DNA of 63,075 bases, the filler included, from Pelomyxa schiedti (taxonomy: Eukaryota; Protista; Evosea): the NCBI GenBank assembly GCA_020536535.1. It is 7 parts of 7 records of this genome, joined end to end, with 100 filler letters (N's around TTAATTAATTAA, not from the genome) between each part and the next. Parts side by side here need not be neighbours in the genome. Positions count along the whole stretch, not along the records: positions 23,844 to 48,857 come from JAHLWZ010000538.1; 6 more parts are not named here. One strand, given 5' to 3'. The translations under genes were made by a program, and so were the position numbers. Position 1 is the first letter of the stretch. Every line of letters starts with the position of its first letter. The notes below the pieces were generated by a model. The model was not told the origin of the DNA, did not search any database, and saw nothing but the letters and a program-made list of their open reading frames with translations. This document shows positions 973-48,957 of this stretch, piece after piece.

Positions 973-1072
973 NNNNNNNNNNNNNNNNNNNNNNNNNNNN
1001 NNNNNNNNNNNNNNNNNNNNNNNNNNNNNNNNNNNNNNNNNNNNNNNNNNNNNNNNNNNNNNNNNNNNNNNN

Positions 1073-1595: not shown

Positions 1596-1846
1596 TTTTG
1601 GTTCTGCTGGCTTGCTGGCTTTGCAGTGTTGGTTCGGGGGGGTTTGTGGCTTTTTTTTGTTTTGCGTTGTGTGTTTTGTGTTTTGTGTTTTCTGTTCTTA
1701 CTTGTTGTTTTTTTTGTAGGACGAGAAAAGACTGAGGCGAAACACTCAATCTCAGGGATTTCGTTGATCAGTCTCCTTCGGGGAATGCGGGTTTTCAACC
1801 ACACAGTGAACTCCAGATTTTGTTGATTCCCGAGAGTCAAAACCAA

Positions 1847-4378
1847 TTAAAATAAGGTTCTTTCGGGTGTGTCGCCTGGAAAGGAACCCAGGGGAAGAAG
1901 TGACATGGATTCGGGTGTGATCCCGAAGAAGGAAATGAGCCACTGTATCATTCTGCCTGTGTGTTTGCTGTTGTCCTGTGTGTTTCTTGTGGAAAGTTGG
2001 TCAGTTAGCACATACATAAGGTCAGCCAGGTGGCTGGGTGTTGGTGGTGATCCAAGGGCTTCTGCTGGGGTCAGTAGGAAGTATTCTGTGTACCACTTGA
2101 GCTCTGGGAAGTGGGACGGGCCGTGGGTGAACAGTGAGAGGAATAGGGATGAGGGGTCACTGAGGTATCCTTTGTTGAGCCTGAACTTGTTGGCGAACCA
2201 AATGGCACAGCTGAGGTGGTTTGTATCAAGGAACTTGGTGAACAATTTCTTCATGTCATCTGATTGGAATTCACAGCAGCAGGGAGATAGGTTCCCAAGT
2301 GCAACCATCATGGGAAGCCGGTAGGTGCTACAGAGTGAGTACCATAGGTCCGGAAGAACAAGGGCTGGTGTTACATGGAAGTACTGCAGAGTCCACAGTA
2401 CTAGTAGTGATTTCTTTGGATCCGTGGTTTGCTTTGCCATGTCAAAAGAAAGAGCCTGACTGACCACCTTCTGCATTGGCAGAAAGGCAACCAACTTGTG
2501 CAAGTCAAAGAAGTTGGAAAGGCACTGCAGCCTCTCAGGGCTGGGGTCGACAGCAGAAATCATGGAAAGAATATCATGTTCGGTAGAGTAGCCTCTATTT
2601 AGTACATATGGAATAACCTCAGCTAGAAAGTTCTCTCTGTCTGGAAAATTGGACCATGATGGCTTGGTAATGAAAGTATCCAGCATAAACAGATACTGGG
2701 CCCTTTGGAAGGTAGAAGAGAATGTATCTAATAGCCACCTAAACGGGCCCACTAATGTGTGTGACCAGCAGTCGGAAATTACTTGAAACAGGTCACTTTC
2801 ACTCCACTTGAAATTCTGTGATAGGAATCCTGCAGCTCTGAACCTACAAGGGTTTGCAACCTGGCTTTCCAAGTAACTTTGGACTGTAGAAACGGCCAGC
2901 AAAGATTCTTCATGCACTTCTTCCTCTCTTAAGGTAAATGTTGCATGCAGCCACGCTAGTGATTCTACAGAATCTTGTATGCACAATCTCACAGCCACCT
3001 TTTTTATTGTTTCTCGGCTCACATGTGATGGTGCACATCTTTCCAGTAACACCTTGTACGTTTCAAGATTGATAGACTTCAATAGTATGGCGTTTATAAC
3101 ATCAGGAACTTGGTCTGGCATCCCTCCACATAGAACTTGTACATATTTGGTATTACCAGTTTCGCAGGCTGTCAGTAGGTTTTCCTCCCACCACTTCACA
3201 GAGTAAAAAACAGTGATTTTCAGGTGCTCGTCAATAGTGGAGTAATTAAGTGCTTCCCAGGCCTTCGATGCCATAGCTGCATTATATTTGTCCCTAAAGA
3301 ACATAAACGCTTCAGCACAACCTGAGGATGCAGCTTTCCTCAGGGGGATCGTTAATTCCCAGTCCGTAGTCTCATAGAAGTCCCAAATGAACTCCAGCAA
3401 AGCAACATTCCCAGAAGAGGAGGCATTTCTCAGAGCTTTATGACCATGCAACACCCAAGTATCAGGTGGTAGGGACTCCAGAATCCACTTCACGCCTTTC
3501 AATTGCCCCACTGAGCAGCATGCATACAGGGCCGTAATTATCTCCGCTTCTTCAGTTTCTGTCCACGCTCCCCTTGTCCCAAAAACGGTATCCATTACCC
3601 AGCGAGCAAACTTCATGTTCCCGTGGCCCAGGCTGTACACCAACGGGCCAGCAGCGGAAGGCTTCAGCCACGAGTAAGCCACTTTATCCACCACGTTCCT
3701 CACGGCGCCGCACTCAAAGACCACCTCAGACCCTACGTTCCTCCACTCCAAGCAGTCCCTTGTCTCCACAACCTCCCTCGCGGGAGCGTGCTCGAGCAGC
3801 CACCTTGCCACCTCCGTGTTCCCGTGGGTAGCCGCGGCGTTCATGGCCCTGTCCCAGCCCCCCCACTTGCCGACCAGCGCCTTGGAGACCAGAGCCAGCA
3901 GAGGGAACATGGCGCCGGTCGAGCCCAGCAGCAGCGCCTCCTCGGCGCCCTCGTAGTGCCTCAGGTGCGACGCCAGCCGCGAGTCTCTCACGGCCTCGCT
4001 GCACATTCTGTCCATGCAGTCGCACATTGGCCGCGAGGACTCCTCGCCCCACCTGCTTTCCGCGCCGTCGCCGCACACTCGGTTCCACTCTGATTGTGTG
4101 TAGTATTCCGGCCGGAACCCGTTCCTCAGTCCAGGAACCAGCACGGGAAACACAAACTTCCACAAGAACGAGGACACCCACAGCACCCTCTCGGCCTTGT
4201 TGTTGTGGTTATTGTGCACAGCGGTATCATTTTCTCTCAGCCCTTGTACTCCTGAGTCACCGGGAATAACTACATTATGGGGCGCACTACAACAAGCACC
4301 GTCGTAGTCGTCATCGCCGAAGCCGAACGAGCGTAGGAACGACGACGCAGTGTCGTTTGACGTTGTCGAAGTACACAT
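1847..4378 (-). CDS. Intronless degenerate ankyrin-repeat-like protein (about 843 aa)
   Basis: Long ORF, first ATG at 4378. Ankyrin-like motifs: AMNAAATHGNTEVARWLLE, ALYACCSVGQLKGVKWIL, ALRNASSSGNVALLEF, LLTACETGNTKYVQVL. Confidence 0.75.
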   Translation of the reverse strand: MCTSTTSNDTASSFLRSFGFGDDDYDGACCSAPHNVVIPGDSGVQGLRENDTAVHNNHNNKAERVLWVSSFLWKFVFPVLVPGLRNGFRPEYYTQSEWNRVCGDGAESRWGEESSRPMCDCMDRMCSEAVRDSRLASHLRHYEGAEEALLLGSTGAMFPLLALVSKALVGKWGGWDRAMNAAATHGNTEVARWLLEHAPAREVVETRDCLEWRNVGSEVVFECGAVRNVVDKVAYSWLKPSAAGPLVYSLGHGNMKFARWVMDTVFGTRGAWTETEEAEIITALYACCSVGQLKGVKWILESLPPDTWVLHGHKALRNASSSGNVALLEFIWDFYETTDWELTIPLRKAASSGCAEAFMFFRDKYNAAMASKAWEALNYSTIDEHLKITVFYSVKWWEENLLTACETGNTKYVQVLCGGMPDQVPDVINAILLKSINLETYKVLLERCAPSHVSRETIKKVAVRLCIQDSVESLAWLHATFTLREEEVHEESLLAVSTVQSYLESQVANPCRFRAAGFLSQNFKWSESDLFQVISDCWSHTLVGPFRWLLDTFSSTFQRAQYLFMLDTFITKPSWSNFPDRENFLAEVIPYVLNRGYSTEHDILSMISAVDPSPERLQCLSNFFDLHKLVAFLPMQKVVSQALSFDMAKQTTDPKKSLLVLWTLQYFHVTPALVLPDLWYSLCSTYRLPMMVALGNLSPCCCEFQSDDMKKLFTKFLDTNHLSCAIWFANKFRLNKGYLSDPSSLFLSLFTHGPSHFPELKWYTEYFLLTPAEALGSPPTPSHLADLMYVLTDQLSTRNTQDNSKHTGRMIQWLISFFGITPESMSLLPLGSFPGDTPERTLF

Positions 4379-4626
4379 GATCCGCTCGGTTCCGTTTGTG
4401 AAAACTCGTAACTGATGGTAGACTCTGGGTCCTGGAGTGTTGCGCCGTAGCACCTCCAAAATGTGAAAGCTTCCTTTACTGAAGGGAAGAGGAGAGCTCC
4501 TCAAAGGAGAGCGTCAAACGCTTATCTCGTATCTACAACGGTTCCGTAAATTGAACGGGTTTTTTTTTTTGAAAGAAAAGAAAGGACGGGTAGACACACA
4601 GGGGCAACACACAGGTGAATAACGCA

Positions 4627-5854
4627 ATGCCGCGAGGGAGATCGTCAAGAAAGAAGGACCAGGAAACGTCATTTGCGGTGTATGTGTACCGCGTGTTGAA
4701 ACAAGTGCACCCCGACGTTGGGATCTCAAAGAAGGCAATGCAGGCACGTCCCGTTGCCACTCTTCTCTGTTTTGTTATTTAATTTTCTTTGTTTTTTGTT
4801 TTTTTGGTTAAACTGGAAAGTTAAACAATGGCCTGAATCCATCATCCCTTTTGTTTTTTTTTACCCCCTCCCGGCCACGACCCTCCCTCAACACTCCATC
4901 TGAGCCTTATGTTTAAACTAAACTGAAAAACGTCTGCTGCAGATCATGAACGACTATGTAAATGATAACTTGAGAAAAGTGGCGAAGGAGGCTTCTTTGT
5001 TGTGTAAAATTAATCATCTTGGAACACTTGGCAGTAGGGAGGTACGACCAAACAGCTTCAACCGAGAACTGACATCATTGTAGATACAGACTGCAGTTCG
5101 TCTGGTTCTTGTTTCAGAACTAGCAAAACACGCGATATCTGAGGGGACCAAAGTATCGAATTGTTCTCCAATTCCCCTAAAAAAAATTTTTCCAACAGGC
5201 TGTTACCAAATACAATGGAGATGCAGATTCTGTGGATTCCGATGGCGCACTACCCAGTAAAGCTAAGGAGGTTGACAGTACTGATGAGGAGGATTCTGGT
5301 GTGAAATGGAATGAAAATGACGATGGAGTTGCAAGGCCCGACCGCTCTACTGCTGCATATCGCAAACCAAGGTGCGCTACTCGTTCTGCCAAGGCCGGTC
5401 TCCAGTTTCCTATAGGAAGAATTACGAAGTTGCTCAAGGAGGGTCACTATAGCAAGCGGATAGGCGGAAGTACCCAAATATAATCTGCTATGTGAAACAC
5501 TAACCTCTCACAAGCTGCTTCCGTTTACCTTGCTGCCGTGTTAGAGTACCTTGTAGCTGAAGTACTAGAACTTGCCGGCAATGCCTCCAAAGATCTGCAG
5601 GTGAAGCGCATTACCCCCAGGCATCTTCAACTCGCTATCCGCGGTGATGAGGAGCTGGACAAGGTGTGCATCTTACCCAACGGCAACTCTCTAACATAAT
5701 CCAGTTAATGAAACACTGTACTATCGCCGGCGGAGGAGTCATACCTCACATCCACAAGGCCCTGATCCCTAACATGCCTCCATCCAAAGCAAACGAAGGA
5801 GACTCTGAGAACGAAGGTTGTTCCTCACCCCAGTGCTCCACACAAGAGTTCTGA
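4627..5854 (+). CDS. H2B-H2A: Fused histone H2B-H2A doublet (284 aa, 6 exons: 4627-4743, 4943-5041, 5084-5152, 5199-5469, 5515-5663, 5705-5854)
   Basis: Spliced H2B: [39 protein letters not shown]|IMNDYVND...GSRE|[23 protein letters not shown]|AVTKY. It continues without a stop through an acidic linker into H2A: [14 protein letters not shown]...[49 protein letters not shown]|[20 protein letters not shown]...STQEF*. Confidence 0.93.
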
Positions 5855-23843: not shown

Positions 23844-26968
<3,125 letters not shown>

Positions 26969-27014: not shown

Positions 27015-30000
27015 TTAGATGGCTTTGGTGATTCTGCAGGCACAGGCCTTGAACTCAGGGATTGCGGCTACTGGGTCGAGAGCGTCGTTGGTGAGTATGT
27101 TGCAGGGTGCCTCCGCGAAGTGGAATGGAAGGAACACCACGCCCACGCGCACCCGCGAGGGCACGAGGGCCACGGCCGTGATCGAGCCGCGGGCGGTCGT
27201 GATCGTGACCTGGTCGCGGTCGCGGACTCCCAGCGCCTCCGCGTCGTGGGTGCTGATCTCCACGTGTGTCGTGGGCGCGAGCCGGTTCAGTCCCTGTGTC
27301 GCGGGATATCAGTGCGCAATCAGTTTGTGAGATGTTGTATGAGTAGTCGTGTAGTTTTGTGGTTTGATGTGTTAGTGGAATGTGGGGGCTTGGTGTTTTT
27401 TTTTTTTGTTGGGCAACATACGGGGCATTTTCGGGACATTGTGCCGGTGTGATATTGGTACAAGAGACGCCTAAATCGGTCGGAGTGAGAAGGGAACAGG
27501 GAGGAGGGAAATTAGGGGAGGGAATAATACCCGGTGGTCATGAGAAGTGGGAATTCGGGACTTGGTGTTTCTGCCGGCTCTCGGAATGGGACAGCTGAAA
27601 ACAGGCCCTTTTTGGTTTTTCCAGTGGGTTCATTTGTATTTCAAGTGAAGAATAGAGAATGTGTTACCTTGCCTCTAGTGAATTTCCCATCTTTATGTAA
27701 GTATGGAGTCCCTGGGTGGTTTGCATTTGGGCACGGCCATTGTAATCCCTTTACATTAACTCGTTTGTTGGTGATTCCCTCATAAGAGGGTGTCAGGGCG
27801 TTGATTTCATCCTTTGGTAGCATAAAATTAAACTAAATAAAAAGACCTGTTTAGAAACAATACCAGTATCTCATATGCATTTGCGTAGCAAAGGTGGAAC
27901 CTCATCCGATTAGCAAAATCAACCAGAATTTCCCAGTCCTGCCTTACTCCAGGGGGCGGTGCCATTGCCCTCTGAACGCGCACACATCGCCTTTCAGTAT
28001 TTGTGAAAGTTCTGTTTTATGTGAGCTCAAACTTGTGTGATTGCAATTCACTTACCCAGTTTTCTCAAACAAACTTGCAGCGGGAAGCACGACATGTGCC
28101 AACTTTGCTGTCTCAGTAAGAAATATATCTTGAACAACAAAAAACTCCAGTCGCTTCAGTGCTTGCTCAACGTGATGGAGATTTGGGTCACTAAGCATTG
28201 GATTTTCTCCCATGCAGTAGATGGCCTTTATCTTTCCCTCATACGCTAGGTTGATTGCCTGTGTTATGGTATTTCCCACCTTGAAGACTGTAAGATATTC
28301 GCAATATAACAGCTTTCAACCTTGCTTGACAGTGTCACTCCCCAAGCTCTCTCAAACTTAGCCTTAACGGCAGGGTCAGTGACTCTCTGGTAGCCTGAAA
28401 AAACATTGGGCAATGCTCCCATATCACAGGCACCTTGCACATTATTTTGTCCTCTGAGAGGATTGACACCTGTTGATGGCCGTCCAATCTGACCCTAATA
28501 TTATTGAATTAAACGTCGGCACCTTCGATGACATAGGCATACACATAGCATGGCCAGGTTTGCGAGTGTCAATACGTTATCAACCCCGGTTGAGTGCTGC
28601 GTGATGCCCATCGAAAAGATAATGCTACCTACATGGAAATAAGTGATGCGGGTATGTAAGCTTTTTCATACTTTTGCTGCTTGTTGCATACAATCTTGCA
28701 GCTTTTCTTATGTCAGATGCTAATACTCCTGTGATGAGCTCTGCTGCCTCGGGAGTATACTTCCCAACCTACACAGTTGTTTCGTTTATAGGTGGTCATG
28801 TTTTTGTTGCTAACCTCAGTCTCAAAGGTAGTAAAATTTTCGGTACATTCGTCAATGAACTTCTTGGCCATCAATCTCTCAGATATGATTACATTCATCA
28901 TGGCATTGAATAAAAACACGTCAGTTCCTGGTCTATGAGCCATGTGCAAACAGGCAAAAGCCTTTTTTGTGGTAAACACTTGGTTTCATATGATGAAAAG
29001 AACTTATACAGTTAAATTTATGGATCGAGGATCAGCCACGATCAGTTTTGCACCTCGTTTAGCTGCAGCTTTTATCCGGAGTCCAATGATTGGATGTGTC
29101 TCAGTAGTATTAGAACCTTTGAGACTATTAAAAAAAACCGATTATCGGTAAAAAGTAAGACACCTGTAACCAGTATGCAGTCGGCAAACTCAAGTTCATC
29201 AATTGTGTTAGTCATGGCACCACTTCCAAATGCAGTTGCCAGACCAGCTACAGTTGAAGCATGACATAGCCTTGCACAGTGGTCTACATTATTTGTCCCA
29301 AAGACACCCCGAAACACTTTCTGGAACAGGAAATTCTCTTCATTTGTAACTTTTGCTGATGAAAAGCCTTGGATCACTTCACTTCCATCTCTAGCTTTAA
29401 TCTGTTTCCAAGAATAAATAAATAACCTTGGCAAATAGAAAGAAACATGGTACCTCGGAGAACTTCGCAGCAACTAAAGTCATAGCCTCATCCCAAGAGC
29501 AGGGTACAAGAACTCCATTCTTTCTAATCAAGGGAGTTGTTAAACGCTCCTTAGACGTATTGTAGTCCTTGTTTTGGGTTAGTAAGGGAGAGTGCATTGA
29601 GTACATACAATTAATCCAAATCGGCCCTTGACACACAACTGCCCATGTGATGCATCAGAGGAAGTATCCCCCTTTATTGCGATTGGGAATCCATTCCGTT
29701 TGTGAATTTGTATCCCACATCCACAACCTATCGGCAATGTGAATTCACACTTTTTTTCTTAGAGCATACCACAATAGGAACACGTGGAGGCGATAACCGC
29801 ATCGGGAGATAGTTCTTTCAGTGCCGGGTAAAGAGCATTCGTCGGACAAGAATCCACGCAGGTTCCACATGATTCGCATGCATGTGCTGACCACTTTCCA
29901 TTCCGTGTACTTGTGTCAACTGCATTCCATCTCATACTACACATGTCTTCAATGGCATTGACATTTCGGACCCCAGAACAAACGTTGAAGCACTCTCCGC

Positions 30001-32696
30001 AGCGAATGCACTTGTCCAGATCTCTATGAATAAATTCATTGGCTACTTCGAGTGCCTGGGGTTTAACAGGAATTACTGTTTTGCTCTCAACTCCGACGCT
30101 ATTAGCAACCTATGTTGAAATTAGTGTACGCACGAAGATTCAATTTCATGTGCACCTGGCGCAGCACACATGTTCTTGGATTTCCACATCCACATTGTAG
30201 GCACCGTGAAGCCTCGTTTTGTGCTGTCTTCAGATCAAAAGGAGTTGTGATGGGAGTGAAAGTCAGGGGTGCTTCCGTTGGTGAATGGATATCTACTCTT
30301 GTATGGTTCCTTGCTAAAAGGGGAGTAGTGGAGAAGTATGGCACTCTTTTAGGGCCAGATAACACCGAGTTCTGAGAGTGAAGTAACTCTGGCAGTGTTC
30401 CTCGGCTGTGGTAATACTTGAGACTATCAAATTCCTCCTTCAGAAGGCCATAAGAAAACCAAGATAAATGCTTGAAACGGGAGGTACCTCGGCTGTCTGG
30501 TTGTTGACCACTCCCGTTGTCAGCAACTCATTGATGGCTGATGCTGCAATTCTTGCAGAATTGACACTTTGCACAACTGTCACTGGGGATAACACAGCGT
30601 CACCGCCTGCAAAGACTCCAATGCACTTTTGCAGTGGGTTCGTTTTCCCAATTTCGATTGCATAGGTTTTGGGGTCAACTCTAATACAGTTCCCCTAGAA
30701 CACGCATTACAAGGGCGGGTAGCTTCCACAAGAGGAACGTATACCCGTTGGTTCAGAGCAATTCCAAGTTTATTGCACAAGCCAGTGTCAAGGCGCTGAC
30801 CAATTGCGATGATTACCGTGTCAACCACATATGAGTACTCGGTTCCAGGAATTGAAATTGCAAAATCGAAGATATCCGCAGTTTTTGGTCGCTTCCTATA
30901 CTGAATTTCCAGGTGATCACTGCCATCAAGTCCTTTTTGTTGCATTATTTTCATAGGTTGAGCAAGGCAATCCAGCTTGATTCCCTCCTCGAGGCATTCC
31001 TGGATTTCCGTAGGATGTGCGGGCATGTTTTCTCTGCAATCGATATAAGATTGATTATGGGAAAAGGTTCACCTCTTCAAGATACAACTTAGTACTACTG
31101 ATGACGCTCCCATACGAACGCAAGATCGAGCTACATCAGCAGAAACATTTCCACCACCAATCACGACTACACGTTTTCCAATTGGTGGTGGAACTCCACA
31201 AGCAACTTTCTCAAGAAAGTCGACGCCTCCCAGTACACCCTGTATGGGAAAGTAAATATCGAAAAGCAGTAAAAAGCTTCCCTTACAGGGAGATCGCTTC
31301 CCGGAAACCTAAGCATAGTGGGGAGCTGTGATCCAATGGCAATGTAAACCGCATCAAAGTCCCTTTTCAATTCCTCCAATGTGATATTTGTTCCCAGCCT
31401 CATATTACAACGAATATCCACCTGAAACAATTATTGAGGAAATGAAATGAGTAGAAATGAGTCTCTCTTACCCCGAAATCAGTGCAAAGGTAGTTAATTT
31501 CATCATCAAGATCAACTTTAGACAGCCTGTATTCTGGAATACCATACCGTAACATTCCACCGGGAAGAGGGTGTCCTTCAAAAACGACCGCTTTGTGGCC
31601 AAATCTCGTCAAAAAATGTGCTAAAAAGAGAAAGGCATGGAGTCAGATATTTTCGGAATTAGAATAATAATACACAATACCGCAGGCTAACCCGGCTGGC
31701 CCGCCACCCACAATCCCAACTGTTTTCCCAGTTGGTGGCTGTATTGTGGGTCTCAATCTTCCATTATCTCTGTCAATCAGTTTTGTTAAAAAAACAAAAG
31801 AAACAGGGGAATAACACAAAACGAAAGACGAACCAAACGGGAAAAAAAACCAAGTAAAACGACACGCACCCACCGTAAAAACAAAAAAAAAAAAAAAAAA
31901 AAAACTGTCGCGGACGTGACATGGCATGCCTATTATACAAGTACAAGAACCTCTTCACGTCGTTTATGTTAACGGGCTCGTCTATCACGTTCCTCCTGCA
32001 CGCGTCCTCACAAAACCGTGGGCACACAGTCCCGCACACCAACGAGAATGGGTTCCGCTCAACAACGCACAGCAGCGCCTCTTGGTATCGCCCTTCCCGC
32101 ACAAGCCGAAGGAAATCCCCGGCTGGCACTCTGTGTTATGTGTTGACGGTTCAGAGTGATATAAAACTATGGGGGAAAAAAAAGGCCTACTCACTTGCAT
32201 GGGCACGCCATCTGGCATGGTGGGTAACAATCCCCAATGTGGTTATCCAGAATCTGGAACCCCCTGTTCAGTGCAAAAATAACCCTTCAATAAATGGAAA
32301 AGCACCCACAGTTTGTAGCATTCGTTTCTGAGCGTCCCTGGCCGCCGCGGAACAGAACGACACGATGGTCCCCTTTGGCATGTCGGCGGCCCTCTCCGCT
32401 GCGGCGTCCCTCGCGACCCCAGCGGGGCTCCCCGGGAGCGTGAACTCGGCCCACACCGCCGCCGTGTTGCACCAGGGCGGGGCGCCCCCCGTGGCCTGCC
32501 TGTGCCTCTGCTGCGACGCCGCGGTGGCCCCCACTTGGTGCGGGGGCCTCCTGGTCAGGCTGGGCAGGGAAATCCCCGCCCGGGAGGCCACGGCAGCCAC
32601 GGAGTCCTCTGTGCCTGGGGGGATGGTGACTGTGGTGCCATCGATGACGATGGTGGTGTCGGGGCGCGGTGGTGGCTGTTGTTGTGGGGTCTGCAT
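27015..32696 (-). CDS. fdhF: Mo/W-bis-PGD formate dehydrogenase alpha-like protein fused to a GltD/SfrB-type FAD/NAD(P)H oxidoreductase and Fe-S domains; about 25 spliceosomal introns
   Basis: Spliced order: degenerate 2Fe-2S fold; [15 protein letters not shown]; [15 protein letters not shown]; [10 protein letters not shown]; [13 protein letters not shown]; [12 protein letters not shown]; [10 protein letters not shown]; [11 protein letters not shown]; [12 protein letters not shown]; CSYCGCGC...LCVKG; [14 protein letters not shown]; [15 protein letters not shown]; [12 protein letters not shown]; TFTNTERR; [15 protein letters not shown]; GVVFLPFHF...NILT...IPEFKACA. Confidence 0.93.
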
Positions 32697-34381: not shown

Positions 34382-36675
34382 CTAGGTATGATTTTTCCCG
34401 GCAGAAAGTTTGGATTCAAGCCACAAGGAACCAGACGGCTTTCCAGTTGCAACACACTGTTGTTTCACATAAAGCTGTATCGAATCAAGGTCACTCAATT
34501 GAAGGAAATTCTCAAAAAGCCACTGTGCCATGTCCACAAAACCAGAGGTGCAACAAATCACCAACGGGAGGTTGCTGTTGTATGTCATATCCCCTGCTGT
34601 GATGTTGAACACATTCGCCAGTGACTTAAGACGCTCAAGGTCACCGTGTCTGCAGCAATGAAGCAGTGTCCTTTTCATAAGCACGTTTCCTTCTGGGGTC
34701 GTTGGATGCAGTGAGAATGGAGGGTGTGCTTTGTTTGGAATGTAATCGTGGAGAATCCAGTCAACAACCTCCAGCTTCCCTTCAGAGAATGCAGTGATTG
34801 CACACAGTTGTATGGTTGCTTCACTAAAGCGGTAGTCATCGCACAGCCACTGAAGAAAGGACAGGTTTCCAGCCAAGCAACTGGATGTGATCAACTTGTT
34901 GAGTTCATTCTGTAACGGTGAGGATGTAAACACAGAGCGGCCACACTGCCAGGCCATCCATTTGGTGAACTCCAAGTCCCAAGTTGATGCCACCGCTGCG
35001 AATACACTGCTCTTATCAGGGCCCCACAGTTTACCGAATGAGGGAAAGGTGGAAATCCAGTGAACAATTTCGACGTGGTGGTGGGAGCATAATGACAGTA
35101 TTTGCTCCTTGGTCACATCAAATGGCTCTGGGATGTTGAACGTCTTGATGAGCCACTGACAGGCCGCCAGGTTGCCACTCGCGAGGCACTCGTGAACGAA
35201 TTCCAAGTGGTGTTTCTGCTGCCTGTCATGCTGTGAGAACTGGGAGTTGAACCACTCGGCAAACTCGATGTTGCCATGACGGCAAATCAGACCAAAACAC
35301 TTTGTTGTAGCTTCAGGGAAAGGGAACCTCCCATTCTTGAGCCTCTTCAGAACGTGTTGTGCCATCTCGAAAGAGTTTCTTGTTGCGAGTGCTTGAAGCA
35401 TCTCTGAAATGTCCATGTCTGCATCACATATCGCAGGCATTTTTTGCAGTACCCACTCGAAGGAATCAACGTCAGCAGTTCTGCAGCAGAGTACCAAAAA
35501 TGATTGAACCCATTCACTGTCACAAGATGGAAAGGTTTCAACCAGCCATTTGACCACCTCTACGTGCCCAGAAGAGATAGCCACAGTCTTGGCTGCAAAA
35601 ACCTCCAAGTCAGAGGATAAGGTGAGCCCAAGTTCATCAAAAAGCCACTTTGCAATGTGAACATGGCCACTTCGACACACCCTTTGGAGCAGTGCGGAGC
35701 CAGAGAATCTTGGAGCGAATGATGCCGGCGTAATATGAATGGTTTCTTTGAGCCAGTAAGCAACCTCTTTGTGCCCCTTTACGCATGCCTCAATGAACAA
35801 ATCAACGCAGCGGTCGTTGTCAGTAAAATTAGAAGGGAACTTTTCATAAAGAAGTTGGGTGATTTCGAGGCACCCGGTTCTGCAACTTGCAATACAATAT
35901 TGCTGGAGAGAGCGTTGTGTCACTGTTGGCGAATGAGAATGTTGAAGGGGAATAAATAAATACGTACAGTCAATTGGCCCCTTTTCAACAAGAACATATC
36001 TCACAAAGGGAATGTTGCCGGATTCTATTGCTACTTGCAAATGATCTGAAAAATACAGCCCAGCATACCCACATTTCTTTTTTAAAAACACAGAGTGAGG
36101 CTCGAAGAGCATTGAAAGAAGAGTCACCAAAAAATAAAACGCACCTTCTCCAGGGCTTTCCCAAATGGGAGTGCATAAGGGATTTCCGCAACAGGACCAA
36201 TGGCAAGGTACGCATCCACTTGTTTCAGCACCATTCCACGAATGCGGTACAGCAATGGGAAAAAAGTGACTGCAATAGTTATCAAGTCCCTCACAACTTG
36301 ACGATGTTCCTTCCTTCACCAATAAATAAGAAGTTCACATCCCACAGCCCAAAGCGATATCAATAAATAAATGAAAGAAAAAGAGCGAGTGGCGTACAAG
36401 TAAAAGTCCTGGTCGGCGGCACCACCGCGTGCGCCACCCACAAGTACGAACTCCCTTGGTATCACCGACTGCATTATCAGGTGCGACCACGCCACAACGT
36501 GCTCAGCACCCACACGGTCCCTCACTTCGACGTCAACCTGTGCCTCCTCGTTGAGGATGATATTGGTCGTTGTTTCTGTTGTCGTTTGATGTGGTTGTTC
36601 GTACTGTTGTTGTTGTTGCTGTTGCTGCTGTTGCTGTTGTTGTTGTTGTGTGTCCCTCGAACCGACGCTCCCCAT
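34382..36675 (-). CDS. Degenerate ankyrin-repeat-like protein, tandem paralogue 1
   Basis: Exon 1 MGSVGSRDT...polyQ. A long terminal exon has repeats ASCRTGCLEITQLL, EACVKGHKEVAYWL, VCRSGHVHIAKWL, ICRHGNIEFAEW, CCTSGFVDMAQWL. Confidence 0.8.
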
Positions 36676-36778: not shown

Positions 36779-39121
36779 TTACGAACCACTTTTGAAGGAG
36801 GAGAGTTTTGAGCGAAGCCACAAGGAACCAGACATGTTGCCAGTTGCAACACACTGTTGTTTCACATAAGGCTCCACGTCATCGAGGTCACTCAATTGAA
36901 GGAAATTCTCAAAAAGCCACTGTGCCATGTCCACAAAACCAGAGGTGCAACAAATCACCAACGGGAGGTTGCTGTTGTACCTCACCTCATCTGCTGTGAT
37001 GTGGAACACATTCGCCAGTGACTTGGCCCGCTCCAGGTCACTGTGTCTGCAGCAGTGCATCAGTGTCTTTTTCACAAGTGTGTTTCCTTCTGGAGTTGTG
37101 GGATGTAACGATTGGGACAGGGAAGAGCTGGGTGGTGCTTTGTTTGGAATGTAGTCGTGCAGAATCCAGTCAATGATTTCTAACTTTCCAGAAGAGAATG
37201 CAGTGATTGCACACAGTTGTATGGTTGCTTCATCAAAGGTGAAGTCATCACACAGCCACTGAAGGAAGGACAGGTTTCCAGCCAAGCAACTGGATGTGAT
37301 CAACCTGTTGAGTTCATTCTGTAACAGTGAGGATTCCGAATCGACTGAGTGGCTGCATTGCAAGGCCATCCATTTGGTGAACTCCAAATCCCACGTTGAT
37401 GCCACTGCTGCAAATGCACTGCACTTTTCACTTGGAAGCAGTTCCTGGAATGATGGAAAGGTGGAAATCCAGTGAACAATTTCGACGTGGTGCTTGGAGC
37501 ATAGTAACAGTATTTCCTCCTTCGTCACATCAAATGGCTCTGGGATGTTGAACGTCTTGATGATCCACTGACAGGCCGCCAGGTTTCCACTCGCAAGACC
37601 CTCGTGAACGAATTCCAAGTGGTGTTTCTGCTGCCTGTCATGTTGTGAGAACTGGGAGTTGAACCACTCGGCAAACTCGATGTTTCCCTGACGGCAAATC
37701 AGACCAAAACACTTTGTTGATGCCGCAGGCTGCAGGAACCTCCCATTCTTGAGCCTCTTCAGAACGTGTTGTGCCATCTCAAAAGAGTTTCTTTCTGCGA
37801 GGGTCTGAAAAATCTCTGAAATGTCCATGTCTGCATCACATATCGCAGGCATTTTTTGCAGAATCCACTCGAAGGAATCAACGTCGGCAGTTTTGCAACA
37901 GCACACCAAATATCGTGGAATATACTCAGCTTTTGAAGAAGGGAAGGTTTCAATCAGCCATTTGACCATCTCCATGCGACCAGAACTGAGAGCCCAACTC
38001 TTGATGGAAGAAACATCAAAGCTTGTGAGTGTGAACCCAAGTCCGCGAAGCCACTTTGCAGTCTGATTGTGACCCTGGAAACATACGTTTGAGAGTAATT
38101 CATGGGCAGGGATCTTTGGCTCGCTCCCTGGGAGAGATTCCATAGAAAAACTGACAGCATCTCTGAGCCATGATGCAACTTCTGTGTGACCATTTATACA
38201 TGCTTCAATGAACATATCAGCACAATGCTTGTTTACAGAAAAATGAGAAGGGAACTTCTCATAAAGAAGCTGAGTGATATCAAGGTGCCCATGGCAGCAA
38301 CTTGCTTCGCAATAGTGCTGAAGAGGATAGTGAGTAACTGTTGACGAATGTCAGTAGGGGAAGGAGGAGAAATACATACTGTCAATTGGCCCTTTTTCAA
38401 CAAGAACATATTTCACAAAGGGAGTATTGCCTGAAGAAATGGCCGTTCGCAGGTGCTCAATTAAATTAGTTCCAGAAGGCTCAAATTTCTTTTTTAAAAA
38501 CACAGAGTGAGGCTCGAGGAGAGTATTGCTAGTAGTGCTATTTCTTCAGGCAAGTTTACACACCATCTCCACAGCTTTTGCAAATGGGAGTGCATAAGGG
38601 AGCGACGCAGTAACACCAAGGACAAGGTACACATCCACTTGTCTCAGAACAATTCCACGAATGCGGTACAGCAATGGAAAAAATGTTAGTGCAATGGTTA
38701 TCAAGTCCCTCACAACTCGGCGATGTTCCTTCCTTTACAAAAAAAATAAAACATTTCAAAATGTTAATTAATTAAATTATTAAAATTAATGAATAATTAA
38801 AATATTTTATAATAATTTTAATAATTAATAATGAATATTTATTTCAACAATTCACTGCACCCACAATCCCAAACCCAAAGTATTAATATTAAAACAAATG
38901 AGGGAAGGAACGAACTCCAAACTGGACAAATCCGAGTTGGTCGTGCTGCTGCCCACAAGTACGAACTCCCTTGGTATCACCGATTGCATTATCAGGTGCG
39001 ACCACGACACAACGTAATCAGCACCCACACGATCCCTCACTTCAACATCAGCCTTACAATTGTTCTTTTCATAACTACTGCTCCTCGTTGTTGTTGGTTC
39101 CCTAGACCCGACGCTCCCCAT
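36779..39121 (-). CDS. Degenerate ankyrin-repeat-like protein, tandem paralogue 2
   Basis: Exon 1 MGSVGSREPT...; protein highly similar to 34382-36675 with the same exon layout. Confidence 0.8.
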
Positions 39122-39887: not shown

Positions 39888-41615
39888 GCCACCAACCAGA
39901 AGGAGGTCACAAAGACCCAGAAATGCAGAAAAGGGCAGGGACAGTCTTCGCATTTACCTGTCATGGTTTAGTGGGGGTGATCATACAAAGAGAGAGGGGG
40001 ATTTACCTTCTTGGTGATGACAGGCTTTCATCTCATCAGCTGGCATTTGCTACACCTGGTCTCAAGTGTGAGAAATCGAAAAAGAAAAACAGAGAAATAC
40101 CTGCAGTTCAAGTTTGCCTTGCTTGGATGCCACAGAAATCGAAAAAGAAAAAAAGGAGGAGTCACACAAATGCGGGAAAAGAAAAAATCTGGGATTGGAG
40201 GTGAGGCAATACTGGGGGGAGGGGGGAACAATGAAAAGGCGAAAACCTGATGAGGAAAAGCGGAGCAGAGCTGCACACGCAATTCCCCTGAGTGGCGTCA
40301 GTCGGGGATACCTATTATGTTTAAGTTTGGGGTGATGAAAAGGAGAGGGGGATTTACCATGGTGACCAGGCTGTCATGGCAAGTCCAGTCCACCACCAAC
40401 TGTACAAGGTGAAACGAGAAAAAGAAGAAATAAGAAACCATACCAGTGGCTGGCTGAGCTGCTGAAAGTCACAGAGGGCCCCAATGCCAACACTCCCATG
40501 TGCATACAGCGTGAATGCAGAAAAGGACCTAGAGGGGAGTTATATATTTGGGGGGGGACTCAAGAAGAGGAATACCGGTGGAATGGAGCCAACCCGCACA
40601 CACACACATTCTGCTGACATCGGCAACACCACCTGGTTTTCAAATGTGAGAAGTCGAAAAAGAAAAATGGAGAAGAGAAATGGAAACATACCGCTGTGCC
40701 CCTTCTCCTCGTCATGGAATCTTCAATGACCTGTGTTGTTGTGAGAACAAGAACAAAAACAGAAAGAAGACTAAGCTAAACGAAAACGAAATAAAACAAA
40801 CACGAAAAACAAAGCAAAACAAAAAGAACTTGATTGAAGCGTTGCCTCAACAGTTTGGGAAAAAAAAACAAAAGCAAAACCGAGAAACAACAACAAAAGA
40901 CCGGTGGACAAAACACAATAAAATTATAAACAAACAAAGAAAACATCGGGAAAAAAAAACCGATACCGAACAACAGAACGTTCTGGCATGGCACCAAAAT
41001 GCGACGGTCTGTCGCACCAGTCACCCACCCGCGTGACACGCACCACACCAGCAACCAAACGGCATTAAGTTTTATTTGTTCTTCTTCTTTGCAACTGGAA
41101 ACGGAAGATACAGAAACAACATGTTCCCCGAAAATCCACACTCTCAGCACCAAGTCAGATCGTCTTGCTGCAGTCGGCACCAACTGAGAGGAGACAAGTG
41201 TATAAACAATCAACTCAGTTAATTAATCCTGGGCGCGTTGGTCCCTTCCCGGTCGGAGCGAATCGACTTCTGAGTCTGACTTAGTGGGATGGAGAGATCC
41301 CCACTTTGGGTTTCGACTACCAATTTGGGTACAAATTCAGCTCCCCAATGTTCACACAAATTGTCTTAAATCTCCCCGATCCCATCCAAATTGGGGAACT
41401 TGCACACACTTTGGAATCAGGGTGAAGAAGCAAGCCAATTGCTCTCGCTCTCTCGCTTGCTCCTGCTGCGCACCCACCCACCACTCCACTGGCTCCCGCC
41501 TCTACATGATTACCGGAAAGGCAGTGACGACCTGTTCAGGTGCTGGACCTGTTTTGAGTTGAGAGGATTCCGTTTTGAAGAAGAACAGTTTTTATGGGTT
41601 GGCTTCACATTCACT

Positions 41616-44320
41616 TCACAACAAATTAATTTTGTCCTTGATGATTGCACGGCATTCAGGGCACTTCTTCATGACTGTGGCACACTGTGTGTTGTTGTTT
41701 TGTTGTTTTGAGTAAATGGACAAACAGACTGCAAAAAAAAAAAAGAAAGAAAGAGTACAGACACACACAGACAAACCTGGGAGCACAGGACCATGTGACC
41801 ACAAGGCTGCAACTGCACGTTTGGTGGCCTCTCATCACACTCCATGCAAACGTTGCTGATGCTGTTGTGCCTGTTGTTGTTCACCATCACCACCGAGGAA
41901 ACATAGGCTTGTGTCCCAGCGACGAGCGTCGTGGTGGCTGTGCATCCTGGAAGATTGCCATCAGTAGCAGCAGCAGAGCGCCCCGTTGGTGTTGATGATT
42001 CTGGACTGTGATTACGTTGCTGAATGGAATATTGATGAGAGGGTGTTGCCGATGATGTTGCTTTGGAAACCATGAGATCAAACATGGCTTGTTGAGACTG
42101 AGGGAGCAACTCAGAGAGCTGAGACCACACACAAGGCACTCCAATGAACCTCTCATCACCCTCCAGCCCTCGCTGAAGCTCCAACTTGCCTTTGTGTTTC
42201 CTCTGAAGCTCTGAACATTCTCTCTGTGTTTCCTTGATCGCCTTGTGGAGTTCGCCTCCAATTGAAACCTGCTCAGACAGCTCCTTTGACAGCACCGTGT
42301 GTTTGTCAGCAAGCTTTGTGCACTCCTCAAAATGGCACCTCTGGAGCTGCGCCAGTGTGTCAGTGAGAGCACACAGCAACTGGAATGGTGGTGTGAAAGA
42401 TGGATCACTTTGATGAAGCTGTGGTTCATTCACCGGCAGAGGTTTCATCAGAATGCCATCCACTGTGTTGTCATGATCACCCTCTGTGTTGTTTGTCAAA
42501 TAAAAGTACTGTGTGCATTTTTGTTTTTACCTGCTTCTTCATTTGGAACCATCTCCATTTCTGATGTTGTTGATGTCAATGTGGAGGAGGACTTGATTCC
42601 CCATACTTTTTTTGTGAGTGTTGAGATGTTCCTGGCACACTCCTGGATCTCAGACTCACTGTTCCGCACTGTCAGTGTCTGCCCAAGGACCTTCCTGCAT
42701 GCGACATCTGATTCGTTGAGTTTCTTTTCCAATGTTGCCTTCAGATCAGTGAGTTCCTTCAGCCTTGATGCCAGTGCCTCGTTGCTTTCAGTGGCTCCTT
42801 GGAGTCTCTGCTTCAGTTTTGCCAGCGATTCCTCAAGCAAGACAAAGTTAGGCGACGATTCCTGCAACTGGGATTGGAAGAGTGTGGTCAACGTGGCAGC
42901 TTCCTTCAGTTCAGGGTGTGCTTTCCCCATAATAATTGCTGATGTTTCCTTTGTTTCTTGTTTCTTTTGGAGTTGCTCTTGCAATTGTTGGAGCTTTTTG
43001 TTCACCTCGTTGAGTTGATCAGCATGCTGTTGGTTGTTTCTTTCTGTGACTTTCTGTGTTGAAAAGAATAAGACACATGAAAATTTTTGCATGTGGCGCA
43101 CACCTGCTGCTCCTTTTCAGCAGCTTGCATTTCTTCTTCCATTTTTGCTTTGAGCTCACTTTTTTCTTTGATGTGTTCTTGCTTCAGTTTCTGTTTTGTT
43201 TTGATTTGTTTTGTTTTGTTTGTGAACCAAAACAAAGGAGCAGCCACATCCAACCACCCCACAAAAGAAAAGTACCACACACCTCAATCTGTTGATTGTG
43301 TTCAAACAGTGGAGGTGATGATCCCATTCGATGTTGCACCTCTGAATTCCAACTTTGGAACAGGTTGTCGTTGAGGGTGCCCTTCAGGACATACGACAGT
43401 GACACTGTTGCAACACCCTCACCACGGCACTCCCATCCACTCCCATTACCATCCCCATCTTGTGTGAACGTGCCTTCAAACTTGTCACCGTTTGACCACC
43501 TCCTTGTCCCCTTGGTGGGCACTCCACTCACCCACAACCCAGTGAATGATGATCCATCCCTGCTCCATGTCTTTGTTCCTTCACCATTCTCCTTGCCACC
43601 AACCCACTGGCCATCATACCTGTCACCATTTGCCCACAGCCTCACACCCTGACCATGGAATGCATCATCCTTCCACTCACCAACATAACTCCCACCCTTG
43701 CTGTTGTTGCCTCCATCGCCACCACCGCCAAACAGGATACTCCCTGTTCCACATTTCATTCCGTGATCAAATTGACCATTGTAGATGTCACCCAAGCCAT
43801 CAGGTGACTTCCACGTTCCCACACCGTGCCACTTGCCCCTGTCCCACTCACCCTCATACACCGTGACCATTGCTTCTGTGGCCCCCCCCTTGACTGCCCT
43901 CCTTTGCACACCCCACCCCTGCGTCTCAGGACAGTTTGCGGTTGCGTTCCACACCCACTCGCCATCCCACACATCCACACCGTTGCTGTCGTGCCACGTT
44001 CCCCTTTTCCAGTGGTCATCCCTCCACAGCCCCTCGTACCAGCTGCCATCGGCACAGTGTTCCACACCCCACCCATCCGGCTTGTTGTTGAGGCACTCTC
44101 CCTCGTGGGTGTCCCCATTGTGCCACTTGTACACCCCTCGGCCCGTCATGGCTCCGTTGAGCCACACACCGTAGTGCGTGTCGCCGTCTGGCACTTTTGC
44201 GGTGCCCCTGCCGTCGGGTTTGCCATCGACCACCCGACCAGTGTACGTTGCACCAGGCATTACCAAAATGTTGTCAACAACCATTGTCACCACACTGACG
44301 GCTTGTTTGTTTGCATCCAT
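41616..44320 (-). CDS. MORN-repeat / coiled-coil / C-terminal RING (C3HC4, IAP-like) putative E3 ligase, copy 1
   Basis: MORN repeats (YTGRVVDGKPDGRG, YEGEWDRGKWHGVG, YVGEWKDDAFHGQG), heptad-rich E/K/Q exons, RING CMECDERPPNVQLQPCGHMVLCSQ|CATVMKKCPECR. Confidence 0.88.
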
Positions 44321-46027: not shown

Positions 46028-46107
46028 TAAACATCACAGGCAAACACCACTAGTGAAAAATACAGTTTGTACTAAGAAAAGACCAATCCAAAGTTTTTTT
46101 TTTGTAT

Positions 46108-48709
46108 CTACAAATGAATTTTGTCCTTGATGAAGGTGCGACAATGAGGGCACTTCTTCATGACTGCTGCACACTGTTGTGTTGTTTTTTGTGTCTTGAT
46201 GAAAAAAATGATGAAAGGGAAAAATAAAACACATACCTGGGAGCACAGGACAACGTGGCCACAGGGCTGCAACTGCACGTTGGGTAGCCTCTCTTCACAT
46301 TCCACACAAATGTTGCTCTCATTGTTGTTGCAATTTGGCACTGATGAGAGCAAGACTGGTGACACTGATGATGTTGTGGCAGTGCATCCTGGAAGAGTGG
46401 TTCCTCCTGCTGCTGTTGATGCTGTTGTCATTGATGGCAACCTTGGTTGTTGTTGTTGCTGGCTACCACCAAAACAGGCAGATGATGATAACCTTGCCTT
46501 GGAAAGGCTCAACTCCACGATGGCTTGTTGAGCCTGAGGGAGCAACTCAGAGAGCTGAGACCACACACCAGGCACTCCAATGAACCTCTCATCACCCTCC
46601 AGCCCTCGCTGAAGCTCCAACTTGCCTTTGTGTTTCCTCTGGAGCTCTGAACATTCTCTCTGTGTTTCCTTGATCGCCTTGTGGAGTTCGCCTCCAATTG
46701 AAACCTGCTCAGACAGCTCCTTTGACAGCACCGTGTGTTTGTTGGCGAGCTTTGTGCACTCCTCAAAATGGCACCTCTGGAGCTGCGCCAGTGTGTCAGT
46801 GAGAGCACGCAGCAACTGGAATGGTGGTGTGAAAGATGGATCACTTTGATGGCGCTGTGGTTCATTCACCGGCAGAGGTTTCATCAGAATGCCATCCACA
46901 GTGTTATCATCACCCTCTTATTGTTTGTCAAATAAAAGTACTGTGTGCATTTTTGTTTTTACCTTCTTCTTCTTTTGGAACCATCTCCATTTCTGATGAT
47001 GTTGATGTCAATGTGGAGGACTTGATTCCCCATACTTTTTTTGTGAGTGTTGAGATGTTCCTGGCACACTCTTGGATCTCAGACTCGCTGTTATGCGCCG
47101 TCAGTGTCTGCCCAAGGAGCTTCTTGCATGCAGAATCTGATTCGTTGAGTTTCATCACCAGTGTTCCTTTCAGTTCAGTGAGTTTCTTCAGGTGTGATGC
47201 CAGTTCCTCATTGGATTCTGTTGCTCTCTGGAGATTGTCATTCACTTTTGTCAGTGATTCCTTGAGCAGGACGAACTGTGGTGCCAAAATCAGCAACTGA
47301 GACTGGAGCAACTGTGCTGATTCAAAGGCTTCACTCAATTCAGGATGGGAGGTTGCCACAAGACTCGTTGACTTCCTTTCATCATCTTCTTCTTGCTTTT
47401 TTTGAAGTTGGTCTTGCAGTTGTTGGAGCTTTTTCTTCACTTGGTTGAGTTGCTCACTGTGCTGTTCATTATTTCTTTCTGTGATTTGCTTCAAAGAAAG
47501 AAACAGATGTGTGAGAATCAATAAATTGAGAGAAAAGAGAGAGAGCAAGCAAGACACAAGCAAGAGATTACACTCACTTTTTTGGCTGCTTTCATTTCTT
47601 CTTTCTGTTTTGCCTCAAGGTCACTTTTCTCCTTTGTGAACTCTTTTTTCAGTTTCTGTGTTTTTTGTGAGCCAAAAATAAAAAAAAGAAAATAACACAC
47701 ACTGACCTCAATCAGCTGACAGTGTTCAAACTGCGGAAGTGATGATCCCATTTGATGTTGCACTCCTGGGCACCTCGCACCTTGAAACAAGTTGTTGTTG
47801 TTGAGGGTGCCCTTCAGATTGGATGATGATGGCGATGGTGGTGACAGTGTTGCAACACCCTCACCACCGCGGCACCCATTTTGTGTGAATGTGCCTTCAA
47901 ACATGTCACCGTTTGGCCACCTCCTCATTCCCTTTGTTGGCACACCACCCTCCCACAACCCAGTGAACGATGATCCATCCCTGCTCCACGTTTTGGTTCC
48001 TTCACCATGCTCCTTCCCGGCCACCCACTGGCCGTCGTACCTGTCACCGTTTGCCCACAGCCTCACACCCCAACCATGGAACACGTCATCCTTCCACTCA
48101 CCAACATAACTCCCACCACCTCCTTCTGGGTTGCTGTTGCTGTTGTTGTTGCCTCCATAGTCACCACCACCACCAAACAGGATACTCCCTGTTCCACATT
48201 TCATTCCGTGATCGAATTGACCATGGTAGATGTCACCCGAGCCATCAGGTGACACCCACGTTCCCACACCGTGCCACTTGTGCCTGTCCCACTCACCCTC
48301 ATACACCATCGCCATTGCTCCTGTGGCCCCCCCCCCCTTTGGTTGTCATCCTCCTTTGCACACCCCACCCCTGCATGTCATGACAATTTGCGGTTGCGTT
48401 CCACACCCACTCGCCATCCCACACATCCACACCGTTGCTGTGGTGCAAGGTTCCCCTTTTCCAGTGGTCGTCCCTCCACAGCCCCTCGTACCAGCTGCCA
48501 TGGGCCCAGTGGTGCACACCCCACCCATCCCTCTTGCCATTGAGCCACACACCGTCGCACGTGTGGCCGTTTGGCAATTTTATGGTGCCCCTGCCGTCGG
48601 GTTTGCCATCGACCACCCGACCAGTGTATGTCGCGCCACCAGGCACCACTGACGTGTCGTCGACAACCATGGTCGCAGCATCCACTCGTTCGTTGGTTGC
48701 CGCTGCCAT
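46108..48709 (-). CDS. MORN-repeat / coiled-coil / RING protein, copy 2 (one frameshift in a G11 run at 48327-48337)
   Basis: Paralogue of 41616-44320; RING CVECEERLPNVQLQPCGHVVLCSQ|CAAVMKKCPHCR. Confidence 0.82.
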
Positions 48710-48957
48710 TACGGTGATGAAATGGATTGATGATGCACAAGAAACACCATCAACCACAACGAAACCAGATAGCGGAATCCTCATCTGCCTGCTTCTCTTT
48801 GTTCACCAACGATTCGACATCACTTGCTATCGCACGCAGTGACATGACCTACCAAGANNNNNNNNNNNNNNNNNNNNNNNNNNNNNNNNNNNNNNNNNNN
48901 NTTAATTAATTAANNNNNNNNNNNNNNNNNNNNNNNNNNNNNNNNNNNNNNNNNNNN

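Follow-up and report, generated by a model that had tools for sequence, protein, structure and literature searches.

Introduction

Molybdenum enzymes of eukaryotes are assigned to only three families, those of sulfite oxidase (SO), of xanthine oxidase (XO) and of mitochondrial amidoxime-reducing component (mARC) (PMC6147048), and it has been proposed that a NifU-FdhD fusion protein might activate a formate dehydrogenase (FDH) “uniquely in eukaryotes” (PMC8887013, PMC10711303). In the oxygen-avoiding amoeba Pelomyxa schiedti, the supplement of PMC10579272 lists the protein KAH3761291.1 as Pelo_6878, FdhF, and a single sentence of that paper names it a formate hydrogenlyase that turns formate into CO2 and H2 with no yield of reducing equivalents; its flavin module is not mentioned there. 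Here we analyse Pelo_6878 as it lies in a window of 63,075 nucleotides (nt; the whole stretch of P. schiedti DNA studied, made of seven joined parts of assembly GCA_020536535.1, with the gene in the part from JAHLWZ010000538.1), and we suggest that this intron-rich gene encodes a single-chain, metal-dependent FDH coupled to nicotinamide adenine dinucleotide (NAD) or its phosphate (NADP).

An intron-rich nuclear gene encodes Pelo_6878

The gene occupies 27015..32696 on the minus strand, as do all features given below for it, and its 25 exons and 24 introns correspond to Pelo_6878 (KAH3761291.1, 1435 residues). A three-frame reading combined with a list of splice sites places the ATG at 32696 and the stop codon at 27015. 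The 24 introns, which measure 39-169 nt (median 49), can each be given GT-AG borders, and phase is unbroken across the exons, with no in-frame stop in any of the 25 exons or in the split codons. The roughly 25 short introns and single collinear polypeptide predicted by a first-pass annotation of this DNA are thus borne out, and the unspliceable stops that it had raised as a possible objection are absent. KAH3761291.1 contains all 25 exon translations in the same order. Our own spliced model, with a GT donor at intron 3, has a coding length of 4299 nt and departs from the NCBI model at that intron alone: in the latter, intron 3 (31770..31929) is GC-AG with its donor at 31929, which adds three residues to give 1435. 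The alternative GT donor at 31938 was dropped because the GC donor is better supported, an intron of the orthologue L168 (see below) lying at the same position. Whole-protein analyses were run on the database protein P0315 (KAH3761291.1, “formate dehydrogenase subunit alpha [Pelomyxa schiedti]”), which came up as a match to a query with the homologue from Trimastix.

Spliceosomal-type introns, eukaryotic neighbours (an intron-split Y-family polymerase gene, ankyrin genes and MORN genes) and conserved intron positions all mark this as a eukaryotic nuclear gene, and its GC content at third codon positions (GC3) of 0.49 is like that of the neighbouring gene. A full-length divergent orthologue, L168 (~40-68% identity by block), was found at 450-5340 of a metagenome contig (ENA ERZ21831265) that probably comes from an archamoeba. 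A script finds 15 of the 24 intron positions shared with it and inspection by eye adds two, and five P. schiedti introns by script, plus two by eye, lack a counterpart in it; its own introns are mostly 34-46 nt, with one extra intron in exon 1 and some long-read frameshifts. On three JGI contigs (L002, L003 and L004), which are probably transcripts, relatives run as one uninterrupted open reading frame (ORF) with ends resembling untranslated regions, and the flavin and FDH halves therefore form one reading frame in this eukaryote family. The idea that symbiont or contaminant DNA was misassembled into the host genome could draw on the three prokaryotic endosymbionts of P. schiedti, at least two of which have FDH genes, and on the prokaryotic nature of the gene family, but it is hardly credible in view of the introns, the neighbours, the matching GC3, the intron positions in common with L168 and a best full-length identity to any named prokaryote of ~47%, and we regard it as effectively refuted. 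The intron-rich FDH gene of P. schiedti is real, and our results support the first-pass reading of a genuine eukaryotic, laterally acquired, single-chain FDH of the bis-pyranopterin guanine dinucleotide (bis-PGD) type with a flavin module.

The C-terminal half is a formate dehydrogenase module

By every sequence test the protein belongs to the FdhF/FdhA family. The metal ligand, C892 (TGT, 29264-29266), and the adjacent H893 (29261-29263) lie in the active-site segment encoded by exon 14 (29164..29401), and the TGT codon excludes selenocysteine at the metal ligand. Catalytic R1085 is encoded at 28453..28455, in the RGQNNVQG motif of exon 19. Exons 13-22 (27668..29567) supply the molybdopterin oxidoreductase core (PF00384 at residues 816-1238), and exons 23-25 (27015..27607) the bis-PGD dinucleotide-binding domain (PF01568) and the stop codon. 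The FS0 cluster is predicted to be bound by C765, C768, C772 and C800, the last two encoded by exon 12 (29609..29727) together with the adjoining conserved K802. C892, H893, R1085, K802 and the FS0 cysteines are each invariant in all 75 prokaryotic homologues compared. With the TIGR01591 equivalog model for Fdh-alpha the protein reaches 802.6, above the model's cut-off of 666.25, whereas the NasC, NapA and FdnG models for other enzymes of the dimethyl sulfoxide reductase (DMSOR) family, nitrate reductases included, stay below cut-off, and the closest PDB matches of the C-terminal half are FDHs (E <= 1e-158). In agreement with the first-pass annotation, the CSYCGCGC...LCVKG, HCARLCH and LRGQNNVQG motifs are all present, and Fer4_20, Pyr_redox_2, Fer4, Molybdop_Fe4S4, Molybdopterin and Molydop_binding occur in the order that it had expected.

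The N-terminal half has the NfnA/StnC layout

The N-terminal half had been described as a GltD/SfrB/NfnB-like domain for flavin adenine dinucleotide (FAD) and NAD(P)H, accompanied by ferredoxin motifs. The Pyr_redox_2, Fer4_20 and Fer4 matches agree with this, with FAD- and pyridine-nucleotide-binding Rossmann folds of GltD/NfnL type in exons 4-9 (30488..31769). As judged from alignment and a predicted structure, however, this half is more than a plain GltD module and has the layout of NfnA and StnC: an alignment-based AlphaFold model reached a predicted local distance difference test (pLDDT) score of 87, and the top Foldseek matches of the 726 modelled residues were StnC (8OH5) and NfnA (9BOV), with template modelling (TM) scores of 0.76-0.77. 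Cluster sites were assigned by alignment to the NfnA/StnC scheme (PMC11829005, PMC10482914). On this basis exons 2-3 (31930..32253) would provide H134 and C138 to site A3, C142 and C193 to A6, and C146, C185, C189 and K208 to A7; exon 10 (30156..30437), besides a linker, C640 and C643 to A6 and C645 and C651 to A3; and exon 11 (29770..30109) a 2x[4Fe-4S] dicluster (C689/692/695/699 and C733/736/739/743; A2 and A4) and the first two FS0 cysteines, C765 and C768. K208 (codon 31953..31955) corresponds to Lys170, which in NfnA/StnC is a ligand of the FAD-proximal cluster, and is kept in 73 of the 75 prokaryotic homologues. The ligands of six [4Fe-4S] sites thus appear conserved, the Lys-ligated one included.

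Exon 1 (32310..32696, residues 1-129) encodes a [2Fe-2S]-ferredoxin-like domain (weak Fer2_4 match) from which the cluster cysteine motif, site A1, is gone; by visual inspection, it has no obvious targeting peptide. All four N-termini of the eukaryote clade lack the A1 cysteines, which 70 of 75 prokaryotic homologues retain. In NfnA, the A2-A4-A5 branch is a dead end at an incomplete pterin site, and electrons exit via the [2Fe-2S] cluster A1 to a bifurcating partner (PMC11829005). The Pelomyxa protein reverses this arrangement, with an intact pterin site and no A1 cysteines. It shares with the A subunits of the Bfu family the NfnL-like FAD domain set inside a NuoG-like scaffold, sites A2-A7 and the Lys ligand, but its N-terminal [2Fe-2S] cysteine motif is absent, and it is not a complete Bfu A subunit. 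The cysteine-free ferredoxin-like domain of exon 1, like the replacement of the Y-R-R motif described below, had gone unremarked in the first-pass annotation.

The pyridine-nucleotide site is altered

The Arg pair of the Y-R-R motif in GltD-like modules binds the 2'-phosphate of NADP, and the C-L-E subfamily of such modules prefers NAD. In the Pelomyxa protein, C392-I393-L394 (31078..31086) stands where prokaryotic homologues have Y (75 of 75), R (71 of 75) and R (75 of 75), and the second dinucleotide-binding loop, GGGNVS (31141..31158), ends in Ser at a position occupied by Ala in 74 of 75 of them; the loop and the C-I-L triplet both depart from the NADPH-specific GltD/NfnL signature. C-[IV]-L at this position, with a loop ending in Ser, is shared by P0315, P0252, P0192 and L168, the Stygiella protein retains Y-R-R, and the C[IV]L motif is found in none of the matches listed in our genome and metagenome scans (generic GltD-like loci, ~35-48% identity). 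There is no acidic residue at the column relevant to a C-L-E-type site, and domain-tree support for grouping with the C-L-E modules, as a swap of the nucleotide-binding domain from that subfamily might produce, is 0.53. The Arg equivalent to NfnB R201 and StnC R239 is retained as R277 (position by offset). With no Arg pair, the enzyme of the Pelomyxa branch probably favours NAD or accepts either coenzyme, which we rate modestly above use of NADP alone. The flavin module put forward in the first-pass annotation is supported, but, with the NADPH motif gone, its “NAD(P)H” label calls for refinement.

Relatives in three supergroups and a prokaryotic origin of the fusion

Proteins of Trimastix marina and Stygiella incarcerata from EukProt were among the best matches of the active-site exon, and relatives occur in Stygiella (Discoba), Trimastix (Metamonada) and environmental contigs; EukProt transcriptomes may contain bacterial reads, and P0185, P0192 and P0252 are only inferred to be eukaryotic. 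In trees that are unrooted and long-branched, with prokaryotes subsampled and the intein of P0252 cut out, the eukaryote and putative eukaryote sequences lie on one side of a branch, supported at 100/100 in the full-length tree (LG+F+G4, 35 rows) and by approximate likelihood-ratio test (SH-aLRT) values of 96 in the flavin-half tree (LG+C20, posterior mean site frequencies, PMSF) and 86 in the FDH-half tree with Trimastix. The loss of A1, common to the eukaryote copies, lends this grouping independent support.

The closest relative, P0252 (L002:135-5681, L003:49-5595), is 63% identical to the P. schiedti protein in the flavin half and 76% in the FDH half. A 431-residue intein-like insert (residues 856-1286) interrupts its active-site motif four residues ahead of the metal ligand; the insert starts with Cys, ends with Asn, is followed by Cys at +1 and has a weak LAGLIDADG match (E 5e-4). 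The Stygiella protein P0015 has the full architecture and a MobA-like tail (residues 1380-1589) with a degenerate glycine loop; in P0185 (L001), a C-terminal MobA-like domain (residues 1105-1307) has an intact-looking one. Only the FDH half is seen in the Trimastix homologue, P0001, its flavin half being unobserved. Residues 1-390 of P0001 were rejected as a real domain, having no Pfam hit; by eye they resemble an antisense read of another transcript, for S-adenosylmethionine synthetase, and the contig is probably chimeric. Three further candidates were rejected as eukaryote relatives: L169 and L170 are frameshifted bacterial-type genes, and L171 is a split bacterial-type gene adjoining mobA and fdhD.

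More than 100 single-chain GltD-FdhA homologues exist in prokaryotes, and we therefore reject the idea that the fusion was made in eukaryotes; since it is common in prokaryotes and the GltD-DMSOR fusion type has been tabulated (PMC6147048), the fusion predates the transfer. Of the first-pass proposal of a domesticated lateral transfer, the transfer itself is supported, but it is not specific to this amoeba, given the homologues in Discoba and Metamonada, and what was transferred was already a fusion. No close donor lineage was apparent among the matches listed in the genome and metagenome scans (GltD-like loci, ~35-48% identity). Among the prokaryotes, a close homologue from an Aerophobetes cluster follows nuoE/nuoF-like genes, and two other homologues stand alone. 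The Aerophobetes-cluster operon (L006:5679-13367) comprises nuoE-like, nuoF-like, fused FDH and moeA genes and may represent a Bfu complex that combines an active FDH site with an NADPH module. Other fusions were noted in P0035 (RnfD-like plus FDH) and in P0190 and P0147 (two FDH-like units each).

Neighbouring sequence

The Y-family (IMS) DNA polymerase gene (~24540-26968, minus strand), which is intron-split, is of low complexity in its N-terminal part and has a zinc-knuckle-like motif, begins ~50 nt past the FDH stop codon. On the other side, also on the minus strand, are two similar long tandem ankyrin-repeat ORFs (34382-36322 and 36779-38215), apparently intron-poor, of which the first was scanned, and a duplicated gene pair (~41600-44320 and 46030-48784) with MORN repeats, a coiled coil and a RING-like C-terminal motif, of which one ORF was scanned. 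A (GTT)n microsatellite (23844-23963) lies at the edge of the piece.

Discussion

Altogether, our analysis favours, with somewhat better than even confidence, a reading of Pelo_6878 as a host-encoded, long-domesticated, stand-alone, probably cytosolic Mo/W-bis-PGD formate:NAD(P)+ oxidoreductase that probably leans towards NAD. The gene structure, residues, fold and phylogeny are results of the analysis; the cofactor loading, electron path, coenzyme, direction and cellular location are those we infer. In our model, formate would be oxidised at the Cys892-ligated metal with the help of His893 and Arg1085, and electrons would pass from FS0/A5 through A4, A2, A3, A6 and A7 to FAD, along a path and a Lys-ligated cluster modelled on PMC11829005. 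The FAD would then deliver hydride to the pyridine nucleotide with no bifurcation, as in StnC (PMC10482914). Because the A1 branch to BfuBC-type partners is gone, the chain would end at the protein's own flavin. The Stygiella branch keeps the NADP motif.

Published P. schiedti lists contain a molybdenum cofactor (Moco) sulfurase, four xanthine dehydrogenases, two pyruvate formate-lyases (PFLs) and NADH-type long hydrogenases, together with MobA (Pelo_18822) and the NifU-FdhD fusion (Pelo_10620) (PMC10579272, PMC8887013). The four xanthine dehydrogenases imply that the host uses Moco. The listed PFLs, NADH-type hydrogenases, MobA and Moco sulfurase fit a net role in which formate from PFL and one-carbon metabolism would become CO2 and NADH, and NADH-linked long hydrogenases would pass the electrons to H2 for the methanogen, so that formate would yield H2 in two soluble steps via the NAD pool. 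A eukaryotic MobA/FdhD maturation pathway, which the first-pass annotation took to be implied, is supported at least in part by the listed MobA and NifU-FdhD.

Several observations weigh against this assignment. The published, curated list of cofactor genes of P. schiedti contains no equivalents of the de novo Moco genes MoaA/C/E and MoeA, and the NifU-FdhD fusion went to mitochondria in yeast (PMC8887013), whereas the FDH looks cytosolic. The C[IV]L motif, with no acidic residue, does not positively indicate NAD preference, formate oxidation would raise the NADH load of a fermenter, and the literature searched yielded no report of activity, metal or localisation for any family member. Metal FDHs are reversible, and the enzyme might instead run in the opposite net direction, with NADH-driven reduction of CO2 to formate serving as an electron sink and symbionts removing the formate, the shuttle that the first-pass annotation had suggested. 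FdhF, a CO2 reductase subunit (7QV7), is among the nearest relatives of known structure, the host has to turn NADH back into NAD+ and relies on a methanogen that encodes FdhAB, and a shift towards NAD would suit such a sink. We nevertheless consider this direction unlikely, since the host already produces formate by PFL, and since the reduction of CO2 by NADH is unfavourable by ~100 mV at standard state and demands that formate be very low; in addition, the methanogen that encodes FdhAB has no recognised formate transporter (PMC10579272).

The enzyme could also be the FDH arm of a formate-to-H2 complex like hydrogen-dependent CO2 reductase (HDCR), or be coupled to ferredoxin and possibly bifurcating, with a vestigial nucleotide site. 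The formate hydrogenlyase assignment of PMC10579272, the loss of Y-R-R, the NuoG-type long hydrogenases of the host and the retention of R277 speak for this, but Pfam finds no hydrogenase domain in the Pelo_6878 chain, the [2Fe-2S] site that would face a partner is missing, the fold that binds the nucleotide is unbroken and was modelled with confidence, four divergent sequences all keep C[IV]L, and the FAD of StnC is non-bifurcating (PMC10482914), so that this alternative looks decidedly improbable. No hydrogenase was seen either among the ORFs scanned, a part of the set in this piece, though a partner acting in trans is conceivable. The gene named formate hydrogenlyase is the same gene as ours, but its product lacks a hydrogenase domain and carries a pyridine-nucleotide module, and judged by its domains Pelo_6878 is not a formate hydrogenlyase. 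That NfnA and StnC have the same layout with no pterin, and that the published list lacks the core genes of Moco synthesis, might suggest a cofactor-free or re-purposed oxidoreductase (NfnA-, StnC- or NuoG-like), or one acting on another substrate, in a host unable to build bis-PGD. This is very improbable, as the metal ligand, His, Arg, Lys802 and C-terminal bis-PGD domain are kept, unlike in NfnA and StnC, MobA and FdhD are host-encoded, and the FDH half is the more conserved half relative to P0252. A formate:NAD(P)+ oxidoreductase is thus the reading that we prefer.

The novelty in eukaryotes claimed by the first-pass annotation has to be narrowed: an FdhF-like gene had already been annotated (PMC10579272), but we found no description of its one-piece design or its relatives. 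In the literature searched, which left most subscription journals outside, the architecture and relatives of Pelo_6878 are undescribed, and the three-supergroup spread, shared introns, A1 loss, C[IV]L swap and MobA fusion likewise appear undescribed; the Stygiella paper (PMC4989108) does not mention FDH, nor does the intein paper (PMC10710043) mention formate or Pelomyxa. In PMC8887013 the name “FdhF” is given to a different molybdopterin oxidoreductase, Pelo_718, which lies outside the window. The part of Pelo_718 visible in the supplement of that paper lacks the FDH active-site motif, and P. schiedti may have two bis-PGD enzymes.

We speculate, at what we judge to be even chances, that a single family of active bis-PGD FDHs, gained by lateral transfer, is common to anaerobic protists from three or more supergroups (Amoebozoa, Discoba and Metamonada among them). 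It would be a fourth class of eukaryotic molybdo/tungsto-enzyme, remodelled in eukaryotes into a self-contained, single-chain formate:NAD(P)+ oxidoreductase by loss of the partner cluster, change of the coenzyme site in one branch and fusion of MobA in another, and would make formate a redox currency in the anaerobic metabolism of eukaryotes. A working enzyme would add the DMSOR family and bis-PGD assembly to eukaryotic biochemistry, and would change the redox map of Pelomyxa by tying formate turnover to the NAD(P) pool, so that it would not be redox-neutral. The NifU-FdhD fusion, so far unexplained, would probably have its client in Pelo_6878, and the three-supergroup spread would add FDH to the genes of a shared “anaerobic toolkit”. 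As a one-polypeptide, Cys-type, NAD(P)-linked metal FDH, the protein is also a simple candidate for studies of cofactor regeneration and CO2 reduction.

Among the known systems close to the Pelomyxa protein are the prokaryotic GltD-FdhA fusions (~1350-1410 residues, 41-47% identity) of Ca. Aerophobetes, Vibrio, Photobacterium, Shewanella, Dehalococcoidia and Thermoplasmata, for which we found no biochemical study in the literature searched. They have the same domain order and catalytic residues, and some have nuoE/nuoF-like partner genes, but they keep the [2Fe-2S] site and Y-R-R, neither of which the Pelomyxa protein keeps. NfnA (9BOV, 9N5U) and StnC (8OH5), which are the subunits that bind NADPH in transhydrogenases of the Bfu family, have the same permuted NfnL-in-NuoG layout, sites A2-A7 and the Lys-ligated cluster; they lack a pterin site, keep A1 and need BfuBC, whereas in the Pelomyxa protein the FDH site is intact and A1 is missing. 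A homologous catalytic module is found in FdsGBA of R. capsulatus (6TG9), FDH1 of M. extorquens (7VW6), FdhF of E. coli (1AA6) and FdhF of HDCR (7QV7). These metal FDHs reach NAD via a separate flavin mononucleotide (FMN)/NuoF subunit, or H2 via a hydrogenase, and have no fused FAD module; FdhF uses selenocysteine where the Pelomyxa protein has Cys. Finally, the SO, XO and mARC enzymes likewise have eukaryotic hosts but are of a different cofactor class from the Pelomyxa FDH, and the metal-free NAD-dependent FDHs have an unrelated fold.

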